Positions 30,373 through 42,230 of a stretch of DNA of 64,000 bases are shown here, one piece after another (positions within the stretch are counted from its first letter, which is position 1; each line of letters begins with the position of its first letter). The stretch spans positions 868,001 to 932,000 of the forward strand of contig OZ251236.1 of assembly GCA_965240325.2 (NCBI GenBank), written 5' to 3'. Origin of the DNA: Rebecca billardiae RCC1528 (taxonomy: Eukaryota; Protista; Haptophyta). The position numbers and the translations under genes were made by a program. The notes below the pieces were generated by a model that saw nothing but the letters and a program-made list of their open reading frames with translations, did no database searches and had not been told where the DNA came from.

Positions 30373-30701
30373 ACAGAGCCCTCCCGACCTCCGCGGCTGT
30401 CGCCAGCGGAGTTGCTCACCCTTATTACTACCCTTGCCTGAGCTGTGTGCGTCTCTTATTCTTAGTAAACTGTAAGTAAATAGGCCGCACCTCGGCCCTC
30501 GCTCATTTATTCTGCGATACTGGTAACGGGGCAAAGCCGCCGAGGGCCGCCCTTGAACGGGGTTCACTAGCGATCGGCCTGGGCGGCGGGCCGCCCGTCC
30601 AGCATCATCTCGGAGGCGAGGCTGTGGCGGAGAGAAGCTGCGGCCTGGCGGAGAGAAGCTGCGGCCTCCGTGGCGCAGTCACGAGGCAGGGAGAGGCACT
30701 C

Positions 30702-32375
30702 ATGGGCATGTGTGGCATTCCTCCGCACTTCGCGTGCCGGTGCGTCTACAAGCTGCCCCGGAAGTCCATCCCAGACAGCTATCACTTTGTGGAGCCGGAT
30801 GATTGCGCTGCGTGCGCTGTGGTACTCGTAGTTGTCACCGTCCTGGCGTTTGCGATGAGCTACTTCTTCGCGAAGGCTCGCGATCCGACTGTGCCGCCAA
30901 CGCAACCATCAGCCGCAGATGCCCCTTCAGGTGTGATCAGCTCTGAGGGCGGAGTGGAAGCGCAAATTCTGCCTGCTACCGCGATGCGCTCGGATGCGGC
31001 CAAAGCAACCGCCTGCTCGTCACGCGAGTCTGTCGACGACGCCCCAGCAGGCACGGTGCCCCCCTTCCAGGCGCGCGAGGAGGTGCATGCCCTCGACCAT
31101 GCCCGCTTTTGGCTGAATGTGCTCATCTACATCACTCACGCATTGCTTACGCTCATGAGCGAGTGCCGGACGGCGTGGATGCTAGCCTGGTGCGCATGGG
31201 TCAACTCCTTCGTGTTGATGACGTTCTCCTTCGTCAGTGGTGTGGTGTCCAAGGGCGAGCTGACGCCAGAGCGCGCACAGCGCACGATGGCATCCACGTT
31301 TGCCACGTACGCCATCCTGAACGTCATCACTGACCTCAACGCGCACTGGGCCCGAGCAGTCTTCACCCATGGCAAGAGCCAGTTCCAGCTTCTGTACACG
31401 TTCCCTGACCTTACCCACGCCACACCTGCAGTCGGGTGGTACCTCCAGTGCTGGATCACGTGGAAGATGCTTCTGCCCTTCCTGCGCACGATCACTGACT
31501 GGCGCAAGCTGCTCGGCCTCGCATGCTTCATCTCGTGGTTTGGAGGGTACTGGATGATCCCGCGGAACGGAAGCTTCCGCGGCGACACTGCTCTGGGCAT
31601 GCTGCCTGCGTTCGTCCTGGGGTACATCGTGCCCAGTGCGACCTTCGTGGGTGTTCCGGTGCGAATGAGGCAAGCAGCAGGAGCAGCGCTGTTCCTTTGG
31701 CTCGCAATCTGCCTTTGGCTGGCATACGGGTGGCCAGAGGAGTGCGATGGTGCGCCTCAGCATGCAGGGCCTTTCACAGCTTCAAGCCTCTTTGTGTGGG
31801 CAAAGCACATGACCCAGTATAGCTACTTTGATTCCAACAGCATAGCTGACGCCTGCAGACCTGCAGAGCACGCTCAGGCCAGCTTCACCCCCGTGGCCTG
31901 CCGACCGAGCTACTACTTCTGGTGGGCCTCCAGAGCTGCCTCTCACGTTCTTGCTCTGGTCGCTGGAGGGTCGTTCATGTGCCTTATGCCTGACAGGCCA
32001 ACACGCATCTCGAGAAGCGGGAGGCACGCTCTGTACTCGTTCTTGTTGCAAGACAATTATTTCTTACCATTCGTGACATTTCTGTTTGACGTCTGTGGCA
32101 TACGTGCGTGCTCTTCACCAGCCATGTTCTTCCCGGTGGCTGCACTGTGTGTGGGGGGTGCGATGATGCTGGCGTCAGCCCCAGTGCGATTGGCAGTATG
32201 TTTTGCCTTTGAGCCCACATGGTTGAATTGGCTTTGGGACCAGCCGTACAAGCCATTACCGCACATGCGATCTGCACTGCTAATGTCCCTGGTGATCTGG
32301 CTATCCGACTTCGTCTACAGAGGCTTCGCGTGGGAGCTCATACAGAGTCTGCTCAAATGTGATGCTGACGACTGA
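30702..32375 (+). CDS. Acyltransferase-3 family polytopic membrane O-acyltransferase
   Basis: ALDHARFWLNVLIYITH, NSFVLMTFSFVSG, WYLQCWITW and about 10 hydrophobic segments. Intronless and visibly lower in GC than neighbouring genes. Confidence 0.75.
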   Translation: MGMCGIPPHFACRCVYKLPRKSIPDSYHFVEPDDCAACAVVLVVVTVLAFAMSYFFAKARDPTVPPTQPSAADAPSGVISSEGGVEAQILPATAMRSDAAKATACSSRESVDDAPAGTVPPFQAREEVHALDHARFWLNVLIYITHALLTLMSECRTAWMLAWCAWVNSFVLMTFSFVSGVVSKGELTPERAQRTMASTFATYAILNVITDLNAHWARAVFTHGKSQFQLLYTFPDLTHATPAVGWYLQCWITWKMLLPFLRTITDWRKLLGLACFISWFGGYWMIPRNGSFRGDTALGMLPAFVLGYIVPSATFVGVPVRMRQAAGAALFLWLAICLWLAYGWPEECDGAPQHAGPFTASSLFVWAKHMTQYSYFDSNSIADACRPAEHAQASFTPVACRPSYYFWWASRAASHVLALVAGGSFMCLMPDRPTRISRSGRHALYSFLLQDNYFLPFVTFLFDVCGIRACSSPAMFFPVAALCVGGAMMLASAPVRLAVCFAFEPTWLNWLWDQPYKPLPHMRSALLMSLVIWLSDFVYRGFAWELIQSLLKCDADD

Positions 32376-33196
32376 TTCAAAGTCGCTAGTCAGCAGCACA
32401 GCATCATTACCGGGCCCGGGCGCGCGCCCGCGGCAGCGGGGGGGGCGCAGGCTGACAGTGACAGACCGGCGCACCGTCGAGCGCGGCTTCACGCGGGCCG
32501 GCGCCGCCTTCGGCCTTAGTACCGGGCGCCGGCGAGGGCGCTGCCAGTTAGGCCGACTGGCGACTACGACTACTGGCCTGAGCACACGTGGGCCACCAAT
32601 AATAACCCCCGCCACTCGCAGCGAGTACTCGGTCAGCGCCGCCGGCTACGACATCGATCAGATATTAGATGAGTAGCTAGTCGCGTTATAGTTATTGCTG
32701 CTCGGATGATTACGGTGTCAAGACAGTAGTGCCTGACCATCACCGCTCGGCGAGCTGGCCGAGTGCAGTATGAGTAGCGGTAACAGTCTGACCGCGCTCG
32801 CGGCCCTTATTTGTTAGTAGTAGTACTAAGGCTACTCCACGCATATCACACGGACGACAATCACCGAATAATGGATGAGTCATATGCTCTCTCTCTCTCT
32901 CTCTCTCTATATATATGTGTATATATATATAAGCTATACTAGCGCTAATTAAATAACCGCCGATATATAATAGCCGAGTAGCAGTATTGATGATTCCATA
33001 TGTCAGTGGCGGCGTTATACTTATATAGGGATCCGCGAATCTATAACTGCGAGTGTCTATGCTGAGCGAGTGAGAGCGACGCGCCATATCCGACGCGCCG
33101 CCGGCTGGACTCGTCCCGGTCCAACGTGCTTACGTGAGTTACGTGCGTCACTCCGTCAGGCTGTGACTACGCCGGCCAGCAGGCCCCGGCAGAGGC

Positions 33197-36100
33197 TCAT
33201 GCCGCGGGCAGGCTCGCGGCGTCGCCTCCGAGCGCCTCAGGCAGCAGGCCGAGCAGCAGCTCATCCAGAGAGCGCGCGCCCTCCTCGTCCGCGGCGCGCT
33301 CGCCGAGCTGCGCCAGCGCCTCCCAGCGCGCGCGCGGCACGCGGCGCACACGCTCGCTGCTCGCGACGAGAACGTCCCACCCACGCAGCACGCGCGTCGA
33401 GGCCGGGCAGTGCGACACGCCGAGCGCCGCGCGGAACGCGGCGCAGAGCTCGCCGACGAGCCCGTCGACTCGCGCCCAGACGGGCGGCTTGGCGGCGGCG
33501 AGCACGGCGAGCCCGCGCGCGCCGTCCGCGCTGCCGTCCGCGCCCGCGCCGGCCGGCGCGCCGAGGAGTGTGCGCACGCGCGCCGGCGGCGAGAAGAGCG
33601 CCTCGGGCGTGCCGGGGCGCACCAGGAACAGCCACGCCGGGAGCTGCTCGTAGCTGGCCGCGATCGCGCGCGCGATCGCGCTCGAGTTGGTGAGCGCGAG
33701 GGCGGCGCCGGGCGGCGCGCGCGTGCGCAGCACGTGCCGTGACGCGTCAGCGAGCGCGCCGCCGCGCGCGCCGCCCGGCGCCGGGGGCTGGGGCTCGCAG
33801 CGCTCGAGCACGCGCACGCCAAAGCGCACGCCGTCCGCGGGCACGAGCGCGGTGAATCCGTCGATCCAAGCCTCGTCGCGCTCGGAGCACCGCCAGCTCA
33901 GCGCAAGCCAGTGCGGCGGCAGCGAAGGTGCCGGCTGCGGCGGCATGTGCGGCGCGGCGGCCGCGTCGTGACGGGCGACGGCCGCGGCCCGCGCGGCGGC
34001 CTCGCTCCGATGGTGCCGCCTGTACCCGCGCTGCGCGTCGAAGGGCGCGTTGAAAGCGGGCTCGAGCCCCGACGCGCCGCCACCTTCAAGTATGCTGTCC
34101 ACCGCGTCCGCGCCGTGAAGGCACGCGACCGACGCCGACTCAGCCTGGCGCGACACCCAGGCGCGCGCGCGAGCAGGGCGATCGCGCGGCGCGCGGGCGC
34201 GGCGCGCGCGCGGCGACGCGGGCACGGCGGAGGCGGTGGGCACGGCGCGCGCGCGTGAGGCGCGAGGGGCGCGAGACAGGGCGAGACAGGCGGGGTCGCC
34301 CAACGACGGCACGCCACGGCGCGCGCTTTTTCGCGCGCGCACACCTCGGCCTGCCACGCGCCGAGCGCGCCGCGGCTCCACACGCTCGCCTCCCGGCGCA
34401 GCGCGCTGTCCGCCCACTGCAGCGCCAGCTCGCGCGTGGACAGCGGCACGGGCCGCGGCCGCGGGCCGCCTGGGCGCACGCGCGCGCTCTCGACGTGCGC
34501 GCCGGGCACGATCACGCCCGCCTCGAAGAGCCCGCCGATCACGCGCGAGATGAGCTCGCTCTCGTTCCGCGCCGCCGCCGCCGCCGCGCCCGCCGCGCGA
34601 GCGGAGCGCAACCCTCGGCCGCCGTTCGGCGCGGCGCCCGCGCCCGCGCCCGCGCCGGGCGCCGGCGCGCGCGTCTCACACAGCAGGGTGTGGCGATCGC
34701 GCTGGGCGGGCGCGGCGGCAGGCGTGAGCGCGGAGAGCAGCGTGACTCGGAAGCACGGCTGCGAGTCGTCCGCCAGGTGCAGCACGTGCGCGCCGTCGCG
34801 CAGCGCGCCGCCCAGCCTCCCGCGCACGCCGAGGCCCACCATGTGTGAGTGCGCGCGCCGCAGGTGCGGCCGCGCGCGCTCGCGCGCCGCGTCGAGCGCG
34901 CCGCCGCGCGGCGCGACAGAGTGGAGAAGCGTGTCGAGAGGTGCGGTGGAGAGGAGCGCGGAGTAGCGCACGCGCTCGCCGCCCTCGAGCACCGCCTCGT
35001 GCACGTGCGCGGCGAACGAGCGGCTCGCGCCGCCGTCCTTGTCAGAGCCCGTCGTGACGACGCGGCTGAGCCGAGCGAGCGCTGGCGCGCCCGCGCGCAC
35101 GTGAGATGGCGGCAGCGCGGCCAGCGCGGCGCGCCACGCGCGCGCCGTGCCCGCGCGGGGCACACGCGCGACTAGGCCGTCGGCCGCGAGCGGGGCGTGG
35201 GCGCGGGGCGCTGCGCCCGCGCCCGAGCCCTTCTGAAGCATCGCCAGCGCCGCGCCTCGAAAGTTGAGCGGGCCACCGCCGCTGCCGCCGCCAGCCGCCG
35301 CCTCGGCGTCGGCGTCTGCGCCGGCCGCGCCGCTGCTGAGCGCGCGCGCCGCGTCGGCCGCGGCGGCCGTGGCCTGACTCTCGCCGAGCGCGCCAAGCGA
35401 GTACGCGGGCGAGAGCACGTGCGCGGGCACGCCCCACTCGCGCGCCGCCATAGGCACGGCGTGCAACCCGGCGAGGGGCGCGCCGAGCGCGTCGCGCAGC
35501 CGCTCCGCAAGGCTGCGCGGCGCGCGCGGAGCCGCGCGCGCCGCGGAGCGCGGCGCCGAACCCTCCGTCCCTGCGCGTGCGGCGGGCCCGACATCGGCGT
35601 GGTCGGTGCGCGAGGCCAGCTCATGCAGCACGGCGAGCTGCTCCTCCGCCGGCAGCGCGTGCAAAGAGCCCTCTAGCGGTAGCGGCGCCCACGCGCCCGG
35701 CCGCACGAGCGCCGCCGCGCTCGGCCAGAGCTCCAGCCAATCACGCGGCGCCGTGTGCGCGCCCAGCAGCCGGTCCGCAATCTCGGCGTGGGAGATCAGG
35801 GCGCCGCCGGCGAGGCCCCAGTCGTAAGTGTACCCCTGCGCGCGGCGGCGGCGCGGCCGCGCGCGCGTCAGCCCCGGAGAGCGCGGCGAGCCGCGCCAGC
35901 GCGCGCGTGGAAGAGGCGGCAGCCAGGAGCCGTGGCCGTGCGCCGCGCACGCTCGCTCGCCCGAGAGCGCCCGGCCGCCGCGGCCGCGCGCGCGCGCGCG
36001 TGTGGGGGCGTGGAGCGCGCGGCTCGCGCGGCGCGTGCGGCGTGCGGCGCGTGCGCGCACCTGGTCATCGAGCTCGAGCGCGTCGGGCCCGGCGCCGAGC

Positions 36101-38049
36101 GCCGAGTCCTGCTCGCCGCGCCCGGTGTACAGCAGCTGCCAGTTCGCGTGCCCAAGCTCGTGCAGCCGCGCGGCCGCGCACACGGCCGTTGGCCCGGAGC
36201 CGACAATGAGCACCCGCCCCCCGGGCTTGATGGGGGTCGAGCGATCCGCGGCCGGGGCCGGGGCCGGCGGCGCGCGCGCGCGGCGCCAGGTGTAAGAGAG
36301 CGGGTCGACGGGCGCGGCGTCGCCCAGCGCGAGCAGCTGCGCGCCCGCCGGCTCGGACGCGCGCAGCTCGGTGCCGCCCGCCCGCGGGTACCGGCGCACG
36401 CGCCACGCCCACGCGGTCTGAATGGCCGCGCGCAGGTCTGCGAGCTCGGGCGCCCATGCGAGTTCGGTCCGAATCTTCTGCGGGTCGGTGTACAGCGTGG
36501 GCGGGTCGCCCGGCCGGGCGGGCGCGATCTGCACGGGCACCTTGCGCCGCGTCACCGCCTCCACCACGCGCACCACCTCCTTCACCGACGAGCCGCGCCC
36601 GTTCCCCACGTTGTACACGAGCGGCTCGAAATCGCTTAGCGCGCGCAGCGTGAGCACGTGCGCGCGCACCAGGTCGGACACGTGGACGTAGTCGCGCACC
36701 GCCGTGCCGTCGGGCGTGGGGAACTCGGCGCCGGTGAGCTGCAGCGCGGGGCGCAGCCCGAGCGCCGCGTCCATCGCCGCGTCGACGATCCGCGGGAAGC
36801 GCAGCTGCTCCGAGTGCGCCAGCACTGGCCCCAGCCGGCCGCGCGGGTCCGCTCCGATCACGTTGAAGTAGCGCAGGGACGACACCGCAAACGGTTGGCG
36901 CACGCGGTGGCGCACGCGCGCCTTGAGCAGGATGGCCTGCTCCGCGTGCAGCTTGGACAGCCCGTACGGGTTCGTCGGCACCTGCGGGCTGTCCTCCACG
37001 ATCGGCATCTCGGCCGGCGCGCCGAACGTCGCGCACGACGACGAGAAGACGAGAGCTTTCACGGAAGCTTCGTCCATCGCGCGCAGCAGCTGCAGCGTGC
37101 CGATCGTGATGTTCTGGTAGTACTTGTCCGGCGCGGCCATGGACTCGCCGACGTACGCGTTGCCCGCGAAGTGGATCACCACGTCCACGCGCTTCGTGCG
37201 CATCAGCCGCGCCATCGCCGCCGTGTCCGCGAGGTCCTGCGCGGCGCGCGGCGGTGGCGGGCGCGCGGGCGCGCGGGCAAAGTTGGCTGGCGCGCGCGGC
37301 GCGGGTGAGCGAGCGCGCGCACCGCGGCAGCGGCCGCGGGCGGCCGACGCGGCGGCGCGGACCTGCTCGTAGAACGCGAACGAGGTCGCGCCGCCGCCGC
37401 CGCCGCCGCGCGCGCGCGCGCGCCCCGCCAGCTCCTCCAGCCGCACGACCGTGTCCCAGGAGGAGCGGCTCATGTCGTCGACCGCCGTGACCTCGTACCC
37501 GCCCTCGTCGAGCAGGAGCAGCACCATGTGCGAGCCGATGTACCCGGCCGCGCCGGTGATCAGCACGCGGCGGAGCGGCACCGCGCGCTCGGGCCGGCGC
37601 GAGTAGCGCGGCGACGCGCGGCCGAGCACGCGGCCGTGGCCGAGCGCGGCGCTGCTGCCGTTCACACCGGCCTGCGCGCTGCCGCGCGTGCCAGGCTGCC
37701 CGAGCGGTGCACGCGCGCGGGTGCCCACTGCTGCGAGCGGGCTTGGGGCGAGCGAGGCGTACGGCGCGTACTCCCGCGCGCTGACGCCCGCCGCTCGCGC
37801 GCCGACGCCGCCCTCACGCGCAGAGCCTTGGGCTTGCTCGTCACACGGGCACGCGCATGCGCCGCCACGCGGCATCCGCGCGCCGCCCGGCGGCCAGACT
37901 ACGCCGGCGAGGATGACGAGGAGGGTGCCCGCGAGTGCCAGCGCCAAGCGCGCCCGCCGGCAGCCCACCGCCCCCGCGCCGCCGACGGCCTCACCGCCGC
38001 CGCGGCCCGACTCCGACGGAGCCGCGCACTTGTGGGTCGTCGTCGCCAT
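33197..38049 (-). CDS. Type II membrane fusion: UDP-xylose/glucose 4-epimerase + UDP-galactopyranose-mutase-like flavoprotein + DUF3431-like domain. Exons 38049-37363, 37236-36061, 35835-34345, 34144-33197
   Basis: N-terminal TM; ITGAAGYIGSH, HFAGNAYVGES, SSSCATFG, NPYGLSK, LRYFNVIGADPRGRLG; then VLIVGSGPTA...GYTYDWG...FRVTLLS...VWSRGALGAWQAE|AESASVACLHGADAVD; then a DUF3431-like tail (IAASYEQLP..LFLV). Confidence 0.8.
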
Positions 38050-38625
38050 GGCTGTGCTCCTCGGCAGGATGCACGATGGCTGTCGACCGACCTCCCAAGC
38101 ACAGCATCAATAACTGTACATCCATTGTTACATTGTAGGACCAAAGGACCCGTCAGAGAGTGAGAGTTATACTGTCAGTTGTACGGGACAGGCAGAAATT
38201 CTCGGAATGCAGATGCTGAGCAGATAACACTGTTCGGCGTGCTGCAGGTACGCAGGTCCCAGGCAGACCCAGCTCGCCTGCGGACGATGCCGAACTAGTC
38301 GATAATGGCACGCACGCTCGCCCCAGTAACTCATGTCGCCGGCGTCACGCCTCACCGCTCACGCCCTCACGTCGCCGGGACCGATCGCGGATCGGCGATC
38401 CTAGCCGTCGACAGCGCCGCAACCACAGCCGCCCCGCGTCGCTGCGTGGTTGGCTGTAGCGGCATAGTGCCACTCACGTGGCACGTCTGCTCGCCACGCC
38501 AAATAGACGTGCGTGCGCGCGTGCCTCTGCGGCAGCGCGTCGCCCGCCGGGGCACACGCGTGCGAGGGGTCCTCGCGTCGCGGCGTCGGCGTCCGGGCGT
38601 CGGCCCGGGCGCCGGCACAGCCCGC

Positions 38626-41600
38626 TCAGGCGCGCGGGTTGTGCATGCGGAAGATGTGCCGCTCCTTCTTGTCGTCGTCCAGCATGGAGGACATGTCCTG
38701 CGGCGTGAGGAATATGAACTGCGCGAACGGGTGCCGGTCGCACGCCTCGAGCAGCGAGCTGACCGCGCGCCGGCGGAACGCGTCGTCCATGAACACGTCA
38801 AACTCGTCGATGCAGCGGAACGGCGTGTCGATGAAGCCCCACAGCGAGATCTGGAAGCACATCGTGGTGAACGAGCGCTCGCCGCCGGAGAGCGTGGACA
38901 CGTTGCGCGTCGTGCTCGCCGCCTGGTCGACCGAGTTGGTGCGCACGCAGATGCCGAGCGTGCTCGCCGTGTCGGTCGAGTTGTGCTCAAAGTCGAGCGT
39001 GCCCGAGAGCTGCCGCTTGCGCATCTCGATGTCGAAGGACTCGGACGCGTGATCGCCTGCGCGCGGCGAGGCGCGGCGGCGGCGGCGGCGAGTGTCGCGC
39101 GCGGGGCGGGCACGCGTACGAGTTGGTGAGCGGAGACGACGCGCTGCGCACGCGTATCGCGCGCGCTCGCGCCCGGGCGCGCGCGCCCCGCGGCGCACCG
39201 AGCTTCTTGCGCTCGCGGTGCCACTGCTTGAAGCGCAGCTTGCGCGCGGTCTCGAGCGCGTCGCGGTCGATCTGCACGCACGACTTCCGGTGCTCCTTGT
39301 CCTCCAACGCCGCCACCGCCGCGTCGAAAGTCGCCTTGAGCTCGGCCGCGTCGACCTGCCGCTCGCGGCCGCGGCTCTCGCGCGCGCGCTTAGCGGCCCT
39401 TTCCTTCTCCTTCACGAGGTTCTTCATCTGATTTTGCAGCGCGCCTGCGCGCACGGCGCGCGGCGGCGGCGGGCGCGAGGGTGTGAGCCGGGCGCGGCGG
39501 CGAGCTGCCATGCGCGCGAGCGCGCGCGCGCGTGCGCGCACCGATCGTGTTTTTGTCGCCGCTGACATCGGGCTCGGGCTCGCCCGCGGGCATCGCGCTC
39601 GCCGCGCGCTCGCGCAGCCTGGCCGCCGCGGCCTCGAGCTCGGCCAGCTTGTGCTGGTCCTCGGCCGCGGCGCGCTCGGCCTTGGCGAGCGCGTCGTTGG
39701 CGTTCTGCAGCCGCTTCTCGCACGCCTTCACCTCGCGGTACGCGCGCTCCATGTTCTGGATCACCTCCTCCTCGCCCGCGACCAGCGCGTTCTCCTCGCC
39801 CTTCAGGTCGCGCAGCTGCGCCTCCAGCGGCGCGAGCTCGCGCTCCGTGTCCGCCTTCTTGGCGCGCAGCTCCTCCGCGGTCTTGAGGTGCTTGTCCGCG
39901 GCGCCCCTGACCTGCAACGCGTTGTACGTCGCGTCGTCCTCCTCCTGCTCGTCCACGCCGCCCTCGAGGCCGAGCGCGTGCAGCTCGTTCTCCAGCTCGC
40001 TCGCGCGCCTGCGCAGCGTCGTCATGTGCTTCTGCAGCTGCGCCTGCCGCTGGCTGAAGCCCGCGGACGACGCCGTCACCTCGTGCGCGTGCTTGCGCGC
40101 TGCTTGCAGCTCGCGCTCGAGCACGGGCAGCTGCTCCTGGAGCCCGGCGAGCTGCGCGCCGTCGTCCTTGTACAGGAAGCGCGAGCGCTCGAGCCACCGC
40201 GCCGGGCGGTCCTGCACCTGGATGCCGTTGCGGTCGTACAGCGAGTACCCGTCGGGCAGGTACACCCTGCTCACGTTGCGCGCCGGCGGCCTGGCGTACG
40301 CGATCGCGCGGCCCTCGTCGGGCGTGTTGGCGAGCACCACCTTCTCGAGCGAGCACTTGTCGATGACGACCTGCTGCACGATGGGGCTGTCGAAGGAGAC
40401 CTGGTCGAGCGCGCGCGTGAGCCGCGGGTCGGGCTGCACCGCCTCGCTCAGCTCGTACTCCTCCGCCCTCGCCATCGAGCTCGTGATGATGTTCGGCACC
40501 CACTTGATGCCCAGCTCGCGGCACACAGACTCGAGCGCAATCCGGTCCGCGTGCGAGTCGACGATGAACGCGTTCAGCGTGCCGCCGATGGCGTTCTCGA
40601 GGGCGCGGCCCCACTTCTCCTCGCCCTTCAGCTTGATGTGCATCCCGATCGGCCCGACCGGCATCATGCGGAACTTGCGCGAGTACGACGGCAGCTTGGC
40701 GACGAGCTTCTTGATGTCGTTGCTGAAGGGGATGAGCCGCTTGTTCGAGGTGCCCTGCTGCGCGTGCTGCGCCTGCTTGAGCAGCTCGCGCACGTGGTCG
40801 TACTCGGCGCGCGCGCGGCGCTCGGCGTCCTGCGCCTGCTTCGCGCGCTCGCCCGAGCCGCCCTTCTCGCGCACGAGCGCGTCGAGCTCCGCGTCCGCCT
40901 TCTTGAGCCCCTCGCTGTTGGTCGCCTGCTGAGCGTGCAGTGTGGCGCGCCGCGCGTCACGCTCGCGCGCCGCCTCCTCCTGGCGCGCCGCGCGCGTGCG
41001 CCTGAGCTCCTGCGCCTTGTCCTCGTACGCCTGCGCCTCCTTCTGCCGCTTGAGCCCGGTCGCCTGCTCCTGCTCCGCCTTGTTCGCGAGCTGCTTGCGC
41101 TCGCGCTCGAGCGAGTGCTTCTGCGTGACGAGCTGCTTCGTCTTCTCGCGCAGGCGCGCCAGGTTCTCCTCGCCCGGCTGCTGCGCCTGCTTGAGCTGCT
41201 CGTGCGCGGCGCGCGCGGCGGCGAGGCGCTCGCTCACGGCGCTCACCTTCTCGCGCGCCGCGTCGATCCCGCCCGTGCGCGCCTCCACTTCGGTGCGCAC
41301 CGCCGCCGCCTCCGCCGTCGCGTCGTACGCCTCGCGCCACTGCACGCGCCGCTTCTTCTCGAGCAGCTTGCCGTCAATCGTCGTGAGCGCGACCGCGTCG
41401 TCGTACGCCTGCTTGGCATTCGTCACCGCCTGCTCGAGCGCCGGGAGCTCGTTCTCGAAGTTCTCCAGGTCGTCGCCCATCCGCGCCACGTCCGCGTCGA
41501 GCTTGAGCAGCCGCACCTTGGCCTGCTCCAGCCCGGTCGCCTCCATGAAGTACTGGTACCGGTGCGTGTCGTCCGTGCTCGAGAGGAACTTCTTCGCCTT

Positions 41601-42230
41601 CTCCTGCGTGAGCACGACGGTCGGGTTGGTGACCTGGATGTTGAAGTGCTCGCAGATCTCCGCGATCTCCGACACGCGCTGGTACACCACCGAGCCGTTC
41701 GCGCACTTGGCCTTGTGCGAGCTGCAGCTCGTGCCCTTGGCGCCGATCGTGCGCTCGATCAGGATCTCGTTGCCGAAGATCTCGGGCTGGTACGCGTCGG
41801 GGCCGCCGTTGAAGAGGGTGATGCGGATGATGGCGGACGACTCGCCGTGCCGCACCAGCTCGCTCAGCTTGTCCGCGCGCAGGCTGTTCGACTTGGCGCC
41901 GAGGCCGATCATGCAGCCCGAGAGCAGCGCCGACTTGCCCGAGCCGTTCCGGCCGAAGACAAAGTTGACGCCCGGCTTGAGGTCGACGAGGAGGTGGGCG
42001 TGGTTCATGAAGTTGATCAGCTCGATCTGCTTGATCGAGCCCGCCGCCGACTGCGCGCCCGAGAAGAGCTCGTGCGAGCTCGACGCCGCCGCGAGGTCGA
42101 GCTGCTGGCCGATCAGGCGCTCGCCCATCTGCGTCTTCTGCTTCTTCGAGGCACGCTGCGTCTTCTCGGCCGAGAGGATCTCCTGCGTCTGCACCTGCGA
42201 CGTCGTCATGCGGTCGAGCGCCGGCGCCAT
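38626..42230 (-). CDS. SMC6: Structural maintenance of chromosomes protein 6, exons 42230-39542, 39444-39199, 39056-38626
   Basis: INFMNH...GRNGSGKS Walker A, coiled coil/hinge (PVGPIGMHIKL), LSGGERSF...PFRCIDEFDVFMD. About 1120 aa after splicing. Confidence 0.92.

Follow-up and report, generated by a model that had tools for sequence, protein, structure and literature searches.

A haptophyte epimerase–mutase–DUF3431 fusion protein with a mutase-like module predicted to be translated but catalytically inert

Introduction

Known UDP-galactopyranose mutases (UGMs) are soluble, single-domain flavoenzymes, and in the usual picture of galactofuranose (Galf) metabolism a cytosolic mutase is followed by a transporter for UDP-Galf. 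MUR4-type epimerases, in turn, have an N-terminal membrane helix. To our knowledge, few galactofuranose-transferring enzymes have been identified beyond fungi, trypanosomatids and bacteria. Here, we describe a gene that would bring a membrane helix, a 4-epimerase, a UGM-like domain and a glycosyltransferase-like domain together in one polypeptide. It lies on the minus strand (38049-33197) of a 64,000-nucleotide stretch of the haptophyte alga Rebecca billardiae RCC1528 (assembly GCA_965240325.2, contig OZ251236.1, positions 868,001 to 932,000), hereafter the window, to which all coordinates of the gene refer.

An earlier note, made from the letters of this DNA, had read the gene as a single-polypeptide line for furanose glycosylation. 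Comparative analysis of the gene and its relatives bore out the four-part architecture in one polypeptide and revealed that it is conserved in other algae. In the window copy, residue losses in the mutase-like and C-terminal modules argue for a membrane-anchored 4-epimerase that carries a translated but inert tail. A review of microalgal glycosylation describes stand-alone UGMs only, and Galf in prymnesins, and our literature search returned no paper holding both 'UDP-galactopyranose mutase' and 'haptophyte'.

Results

A UGM homologue predicted to be inactive

Of all solved structures, only eukaryotic UGMs matched the middle domain significantly (14 sequences, E about 1e-13), among them the enzymes of Trypanosoma cruzi (4dsg, 9.3e-14) and Aspergillus fumigatus (3uka, 1.5e-13). 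The next matches were unrelated oxidoreductases at E values of 0.035 and 1.1, and no oxidoreductase other than UGM matched the domain better. A word search with the 1383-residue unspliced open reading frame, limited to the UGM region, gave no match, but this blank is uninformative, as low-complexity words probably crowded the list of candidates. When 1.84 billion representative sequences were searched exhaustively with HMMER, 112 UGM-like proteins were returned (best E 5e-19), none of which reached 1e-30; therefore, neither the middle-domain protein nor a close relative is present in that collection. A Pfam scan of the domain gave no match at all, neither NAD_binding_8 nor Amino_oxidase, while all of its homologues give NAD_binding_8 at 1e-7 to 1e-19. 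Judged by these comparisons, the flavoprotein-like middle domain is a UGM homologue and not another oxidoreductase, in line with the earlier proposal that it follows eukaryotic UGM.

We aligned the domain with 21 relatives and with a model of the closest relative found, a fusion gene on a 5.2-kb contig (L002). The residue numbering of A. fumigatus UGM was mapped via an Aspergillus-type sequence, for which 24 of 24 residue letters matched at one offset. The window copy retained the Rossmann glycines (GSGPTA, in which the third is Ala), P105, W167, R327, P420 and W443, as well as R445, G446, G449, W451, E454 and G465. Replacements were found at H63G, R91P, Y104L, Q107E, F158H, Y162M, N163A, R182S, W204A and N207R, and likewise at W315V, Y317H, Y419R, R447A, Y453A, N457S, Q458A, D459S and H460V. 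Leaving F158 aside, these are 18 invariant positions, canonical in L002 and in 20 other relatives. In addition, the flavin motif GGLA reads AGPD and the acidic residue after beta-2 (D/E38) has become Q. The histidine of the His loop (G-[GV]-H63), present in 21 of 22 relatives, is Gly in the window copy, and of the substrate-binding set R182, R327, Y419, R447, Y453 and N457-H460 only R327 was retained. L002 and almost all other relatives are canonical at every position that is replaced in the window copy.

The amino acid composition of the domain is also shifted: Ala, Gly, Arg and Pro together make up 52% of it (about 30% in relatives), and Phe, Tyr, Ile, Asn and Lys together 4% (about 20% in relatives). 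A hidden intact mutase in another frame was ruled out, as a canonical UGM motif occurs in no minus-strand frame of 33100-38100. With nearly all of its cofactor- and substrate-contacting residues lost, the mutase module of the window copy is degenerate and cannot be expected to make UDP-furanose.

A 944-residue transcript product of Stenamoeba stenopodia (P0008) consists of UGM-like and DUF3431 domains, and its UGM-like part has lost many of the same catalytic residues (H63Q, Y104E, Y419R, R447S, N457S, H460Q). This independent parallel suggests that a non-catalytic UGM-like module can be kept beside DUF3431.

A reading frame kept under rapid divergence

The rates of change of the modules were compared through the identities of the window copy and of L002 to five prymnesiophyte fusions. 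For the epimerase, the two were alike (54-57% for the window copy, 53-59% for L002). In contrast, identity in the UGM domain was 31-34% for the window copy and 64-68% for L002, and in the C-terminal domain 18-25% and 25-35%, respectively.

Compared with its tightly conserved relatives, exon 3, which encodes the body of the UGM-like domain, carries no fewer than 12 internal insertions or deletions (indels) that are specific to the window copy, and every conserved block stands in the same frame. Under neutral decay, with a one-in-three chance per event, 12 indels would all keep the frame with a probability of about 2e-6; for the nine small indels alone the figure is about 5e-5. Coding signal was likewise retained. 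Each exon shows a periodic GC content across codon positions 1/2/3, with 0.72/0.46/0.96 in the epimerase core, 0.83/0.65/0.91 in the UGM-like exon 3 and 0.83/0.63/0.93 in the DUF3431-like part, and in all three introns GC content is flat (0.82-0.90 at all positions). Because the frame survives the indels and codon periodicity is retained, unlike in the introns, we favour over a dead tail that the UGM-like domain is probably a translated, structurally constrained and catalytically inert pseudoenzyme.

An anchored GalE-type epimerase

The protein has a single hydrophobic helix at residues 33-52, where the 19-residue Kyte-Doolittle mean of 2.27 is the maximum of the whole protein. An N-terminal membrane anchor had been claimed before, and the helix with the basic residues preceding it agrees with that claim; the type II orientation is a candidate.

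The epimerase that follows was matched by Pfam PF01370 (E 4.7e-42) and by the solved GalE structure 8wxk (E 1.5e-65, query 3-283 to chain 60-331). The NAD-binding motif GxxGxxG (GAAGYIGSH, residues 166-174), the catalytic Ser (SSSCATFG) and YxxxK (NPYGLSKLHAE) are all present, the latter two aligned to the same positions in 8wxk. By these signatures, the epimerase is an ordinary, intact enzyme of the GalE family with predicted 4-epimerase activity, and the previous description of an intact epimerase of the short-chain dehydrogenase/reductase (SDR) type stands.

Its best named match is a 433-residue protein of Pavlovales sp. CCMP2436 (57% identity). In a phylogenetic tree, the window epimerase falls into a small clade with this protein, beside the clade of prymnesiophyte fusions, within a eukaryotic clade of 430-490-residue proteins and next to a 428-residue Sphagnum protein; the tree includes no characterised MUR4. 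The names of the hits mix 'UDP-glucose' and 'UDP-arabinose' 4-epimerase, and Atlas gives GalE only. The sequence evidence thus says only 'GalE family', and a MUR4-like, UDP-xylose-directed reading is not separable from an ordinary UDP-glucose 4-epimerase. Beside a UGM, conversion of UDP-glucose (UDP-Glc) to UDP-galactopyranose (UDP-Galp) would be the more economical substrate assignment than UDP-xylose (UDP-Xyl).

A contig from another sample encodes a 62% identical epimerase (L001:7216-8590, plus strand) that adjoins an ankyrin-repeat gene. No UGM or DUF3431 region lies downstream of the epimerase on this contig, and therefore stand-alone relatives of the fused epimerase exist.

A C-terminal DUF3431 domain with a predicted GT-A-like fold

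The C-terminal domain gave no match to PF11913 (DUF3431) at E up to 10 or at 0.01 and no sequence match in the PDB. As these direct scans were blank, profile-profile comparison was needed. Aligned by hhalign with 49 homologous domains, the domain scored a probability of 98.1% (E 1.1e-13, 198 columns); PF11913 individually matches 39 of the 50 domains in the alignment, the window domain included, with a best E of 5e-23. A direct phmmer comparison to the C-terminus of L002 scored 94.8 bits, and with the language-model features of Atlas 56 of 60 hits were DUF3431 (score 0.95). The DUF3431-like C-terminus postulated in the earlier note was thereby recovered.

Two of the most conserved DUF3431 residues are lost in the window copy. 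The invariant Tyr of the YExC strand (Y46), found in 49 of 49 other domains, is Leu, and the near-invariant His of the 'HI' helix (H93), found in 47 of 49, is Ala. A further conserved position, H18 (His in 35 of 47), is Arg. L002 retains all three residues. These replacements indicate that the DUF3431 domain of the window copy is impaired.

An AlphaFold2 model of the domain built from 50 sequences (predicted local distance difference test score 84.1, predicted template modelling score 0.83) shows an alternating beta/alpha sandwich. Foldseek matches of this model were weak (top E about 1e-3) and fell on GT-A nucleotide-sugar transferases, including ArnC, Dpm synthase, B3GNT2, GlfT2 and AfGfsA, and on nucleotidyltransferases of the same fold class. 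A structure scan independent of Foldseek returned 27 chains at Z of at least 8, almost all of them GT-A transferases. The Z values (WrtF 9.6, chitin synthase 9.5, ArnC 9.5, SpsA 9.4, AfGfsA 8.1, GlfT2 7.5) lie, at up to 9.6, just above the background range by the scan's own guidance, and it is the consistent class of hits that carries weight. Animal-type DUF3431 domains have Q-[GA]-[DE] after the fourth strand; neither the haptophyte-type domains nor the window copy (FLVRPG) have an acidic pair there. Based on the model, the DUF3431 domain is predicted to adopt a GT-A glycosyltransferase-like fold.

A conserved family of fusions

Long fusion proteins make up many of the best hits of the UGM-like domain. 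Epimerase, UGM and the same C-terminal domain are combined in the Prymnesium parvum protein AB1Y20_001196 (P0258, 1212 residues), an Emiliania huxleyi protein (P0264, A0A7S3-series, 1142 residues), an MMETSP transcript (P0253, 1185 residues, for which PF11913 is recorded) and numerous metagenomic proteins. These cover 96-97% of a query made of the UGM and C-terminal domains and have Epimerase Pfam domains, and the full-length fusion homologues carry an N-terminal hydrophobic helix. The L002 contig (73% G+C) likewise encodes all three modules. Its epimerase is 69% identical to that of the window copy over 216 residues, or 65% over 284 aligned positions, and a 360-residue stretch in one frame runs from the end of the UGM through DUF3431. 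A fragment from the same contig (P0108) spans the junction of epimerase and UGM and reads IDPLAY ... RIVIVGAGPTG, where the linker of the window protein reads VDPLSY. A gene of the SASA family (sialate O-acetylesterase-like) follows the fusion gene of this contig on the opposite strand (L002:4199-5173, minus).

The earlier suggestion to look for the same architecture in algal proteomes was thus answered by Prymnesium, Emiliania, the MMETSP transcript and L002. As far as these sequences tell, the membrane-anchored epimerase-UGM-DUF3431 protein is a conserved family. It appears undescribed, and public databases list its members as hypothetical proteins.

Euglenids (Euglena longa, E. gracilis and Ploeotia; P0004, P0246, P0247 and P0007) have the same domain order with a different SDR. 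The nearest solved relatives of the euglenid SDR are dTDP-glucose 4,6-dehydratases (1.6e-18), whereas the haptophyte type matches GalE (6.7e-73), and the euglenid SDRs stand apart in the epimerase tree, at the end of a very long branch. Hence, the epimerase partner was gained on at least two occasions. Two metagenomic proteins (P0024, P0265) show a permuted order, in which UGM, a DUF3431-like domain and an SDR follow the N-terminal helix. Together with the euglenid SDR, these indicate that the assembly arose or was rearranged more than once.

Di-domain proteins of UGM and DUF3431 were found in the echinoderms Patiria and Acanthaster, the coral Desmophyllum and the amoebozoan Stenamoeba. Other fusions comprise UGM-DUF707-UGM in Carpediemonas (P0001) and, in metagenomes, UGM-GT2 (P0266) and UGM-GT90-DUF3431 (P0271). 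Across these proteins, UGM is repeatedly joined to transferase-like domains. DUF3431 itself is common in giant viruses by automatic cluster labels, and in the literature searched it receives passing mention only, in four papers, and is uncharacterised.

Gene structure and neighbouring loci

The gene starts with an ATG at 38049 and ends with a stop codon at 33197-33199. Splicing of three GT...AG introns, whose splice-site strings matched exactly, joins four exons into a single frame that encodes a protein of 1433 residues (Table 1). Before splicing, the ATG frame from 38049 covers the epimerase and the UGM-like region, and a second frame reaches the stop.

Each splice was compared with homologues. 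Residues 162-195, encoded in exon 1, correspond to positions 1-33 of the Pfam Epimerase profile, and removal of intron 1 joins FAFYEQ to DLADTAAM with the GalE alignment carrying on across the join. At intron 2, the 75 extra residues are missing from homologues, which read TDAKGFTWDIG. Across intron 3 the spliced protein reads WSRGALGAWQAEAESASVACLHGADAVD, which equals in length the corresponding stretch in the uninterrupted frame of L002. Both the prediction of three GT-AG introns with one spliced frame and that of exact spacing across intron 3 were thus upheld. The periodic exons, flat introns and homologues together support the gene model, and on this basis the locus is a genuine spliced gene on the minus strand, in a very GC-rich alga of haptophyte type.

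A reading as two separate genes, an epimerase followed by a UGM-like gene, was ruled out on sequence: the junction lies inside exon 2, where the linker and the start of the UGM-like domain are in one continuous frame with the epimerase, and coding periodicity is unbroken. Moreover, the linker motif is kept in homologues, some of which are single transcriptome-derived open reading frames (ORFs).

Table 1. Features of the fusion gene (positions in the window; GC values are for codon positions 1/2/3)
Feature	Position	Strand	Description
Exon 1	37363..38049	-	Start codon and short N-terminal tail, then membrane helix, stem rich in Ala/Gly/Arg and first epimerase beta-alpha-beta unit (GAAGYIGSH)
Transmembrane helix	37894..37953	-	Residues 33-52, LALALAGTLLVILAGVVW; RRAR just before; by Kyte-Doolittle; candidate type II anchor
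Intron 1	37237..37362	-	126 nt, GT...AG, in frame; GC 0.88/0.90/0.86
Exon 2, whole	36061..37236	-	
Exon 2, first part	36385..37236	-	Catalytic core of GalE-type 4-epimerase (SSSCATFG, YGLSK, RYFNVIG)
Exon 2, second part	36061..36384	-	Linker with conserved VDPLSY, then UGM-like Rossmann start RVLIVGSGPTAVCAAARLHELG
Intron 2	35836..36060	-	225 nt, GT...AG, in frame; GC 0.85/0.85/0.89
Exon 3	34345..35835	-	Main part of the degenerate UGM-like domain (GYTYDWG ... PCFRVTLLS ... VWSRGALGAWQAE)
Intron 3	34145..34344	-	200 nt, GT...AG, frame-shifting; GC 0.82/0.84/0.82
Exon 4, whole	33197..34144	-	
Exon 4, first part	33944..34144	-	Last UGM-like helix (HGADAVDSIL) and linker; aligned to L002 and UGMs
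Exon 4, second part	33197..33943	-	Divergent DUF3431-like domain, predicted GT-A-like fold; includes stop codon

Directly upstream of the fusion gene and on the same strand, a 946-residue ORF (39390-42230, minus) with SMC_N, AAA_23 and SMC hinge domains encodes an SMC-family protein and probably extends into a further exon. Just downstream of the stop codon, a lower-GC (about 52%) intergenic stretch contains a (TC)n and (TA)n microsatellite at 32880-32930. It is followed by a 583-residue ORF on the plus strand (30624-32375) that matches no Pfam family and, with its many hydrophobic stretches, probably encodes a multi-pass membrane protein.

Discussion

Our analyses favour a reading in which only the epimerase of the window copy keeps its catalytic signature. 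The mutase module would have been remodelled into a non-catalytic pseudoenzyme domain rich in Ala, Gly, Arg and Pro, and the working protein would be a membrane-anchored 4-epimerase whose mutase-like and glycosyltransferase-like tail is translated but has no catalytic activity. We give this reading a probability of about 0.68. The tail might serve as a scaffold or as the partner of an intact paralogue. Several points weigh against it. Inactivity is deduced from the loss of residues, and a remodelled site with a different activity is possible. Introns may have gone unrecognised among the large 'insertions' of exon 3. At the roughly 80% G+C of the region stop codons are rare in all frames, so that an open frame alone is weak proof, and expression, the three splices and the continuity of the transcript rest on sequence signals and homologues. 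Lastly, the GT-A assignment depends on a predicted model with middling Z values (up to 9.6), and the haptophyte-type DUF3431 domains are without an evident DxD motif.

Rarity of stop codons is also the starting point for regarding the gene, or its 3' two-thirds, as a decaying duplicate, an unexpressed or untranslated relic of the intact family member. Long ORFs do occur in all six frames of the region, the sequence has drifted heavily towards Ala, Gly, Arg and Pro, and two of the three modules have lost catalytic residues. Nevertheless, the epimerase and that of the intact relative evolve at equal rates. Exons 3 and 4 show a strong periodicity of GC over codon positions that the introns lack, the exon 3 indels all keep the frame, and over 2.7 kb the conserved blocks, hydrophobic as well as structural, are still collinear. 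We therefore regard a relic as unlikely. The same maintained frame and fold-defining blocks would suit a UGM-like module that had taken on another ligand or reaction, or that had become a sugar-nucleotide-binding or oligomerisation domain regulating or docking an intact paralogue, and the degenerate domain of Stenamoeba could be seen in this light. There is, however, no positive sign of any new site in the domain, and its shift in composition resembles relaxed constraint under GC pressure and not directed change, which makes such neofunctionalisation an improbable account.

At the other extreme, all three modules of the window copy could be active, with epimerisation, mutation from pyranose to furanose and transfer taking place in the secretory lumen, either from UDP-Xyl via UDP-arabinopyranose to UDP-arabinofuranose or from UDP-Glc via UDP-Galp to UDP-Galf. 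In favour of this, the fusion architecture is genuine and conserved, the frame has been kept, and the copy still has the Rossmann GxGxxA, R327, the WSRG...W...E block and the fold signature as a whole. Yet nearly all residues that contact flavin or substrate in solved UGMs have been replaced, although they are invariant in more than 20 relatives including the closest one, the UGM-like domain has diverged twice as much as the epimerase would lead one to expect, and DUF3431 has lost its invariant Tyr and near-invariant His. We consider full activity of the window copy highly improbable, and prefer the anchored 4-epimerase with an inert tail.

The furanose line in one polypeptide that the earlier note proposed is a reasonable inference at the level of the family. 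It does not hold for the window copy, which lacks the catalytic residues of the mutase and the Tyr and His of DUF3431. In intact family members, the modules would plausibly act in sequence, from UDP-Glc to UDP-Galp, then to UDP-Galf and on to an acceptor. Given its predicted GT-A fold and its repeated fusion to UGM, DUF3431 may be a glycosyltransferase-like module that works with UDP-Galf, a case of guilt by fusion and not a demonstration. Tentatively, and at somewhat less than even odds, these ideas can be joined: in haptophytes and, with another SDR, in euglenids, an anchored polypeptide would make UDP-Galp, convert it to UDP-Galf and hand it to DUF3431 as a new GT-A-like transferase family. 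DUF3431, which is fused to UGM also in echinoderms, corals and amoebozoans and is common in giant viruses by automatic cluster labels, would then be the missing galactofuranosyltransferase of these lineages, and the window copy would represent a paralogue with a maintained pseudo-mutase, which docks to or regulates the active one.

The repeated fusion of UGM to DUF3431, with GT2 or GT90 at the same position elsewhere, and the predicted GT-A fold give DUF3431 a testable candidate function. The domain occurs widely among protists and marine invertebrates and, going by automatic cluster labels, in giant viruses. A membrane-anchored and possibly lumenal UGM would challenge the picture of a cytosolic mutase served by a UDP-Galf transporter. 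For the gene described here, a label as UGM or as a working 'furanose line' would be a wrong annotation; it would instead offer a clean example of a pseudoenzyme module retained in a multi-enzyme protein.

Compared with known systems, the epimerase shares with GalE-family and MUR4 enzymes the extended-SDR fold with GxxGxxG, catalytic Ser and YxxxK, and with plant Golgi MUR4 also the N-terminal membrane helix, but some 900 further residues follow it here. From its Rossmann start through to its last helix, the UGM-like domain is collinear, block by block, with eukaryotic UGM (A. fumigatus 3uka/3ute, T. cruzi 4dsg), and it retains the skeleton GxGxx[GA], R327 and WSRG...W...E...G..AVD. In contrast to these enzymes, it is without H63, GGLA, R182, R447, Y419, Y453 and N457-H460, is fused and membrane-anchored, and contains long low-complexity insertions. 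As modelled, the C-terminal domain can be aligned over 160-190 residues, at Z of 7.5-9.6, with the galactofuranosyltransferases GfsA of A. fumigatus (8yrl) and GlfT2 of Mycobacterium tuberculosis (4fix) and with other GT-A enzymes (SpsA, ArnC, WrtF), and Foldseek puts it in the same fold class; it has, however, no sequence similarity to them, and the haptophyte type has no evident DxD.

Consecutive sugar-nucleotide steps are likewise combined in one polypeptide in the yeast epimerase-mutarotase GAL10 (PDB 1z45), which is among the solved-structure matches of the window epimerase, and in a Prymnesium RmlC/D fusion (PMC6556577), but these have other partner domains and neither a membrane anchor nor a transferase-like module. 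Closest are the haptophyte fusions (P0258, P0264 and L002), which share with the window protein the domain order, the N-terminal helix, a homologous C-terminus and a GalE-type epimerase that is 54-65% identical, and the DPL motif of the linker is common to the window protein, L002 and related fragments. Whereas the UGM domains of these fusions are 64-78% identical to one another and keep every canonical UGM residue, that of the window copy is 31-34% identical to them and has lost the catalytic set.

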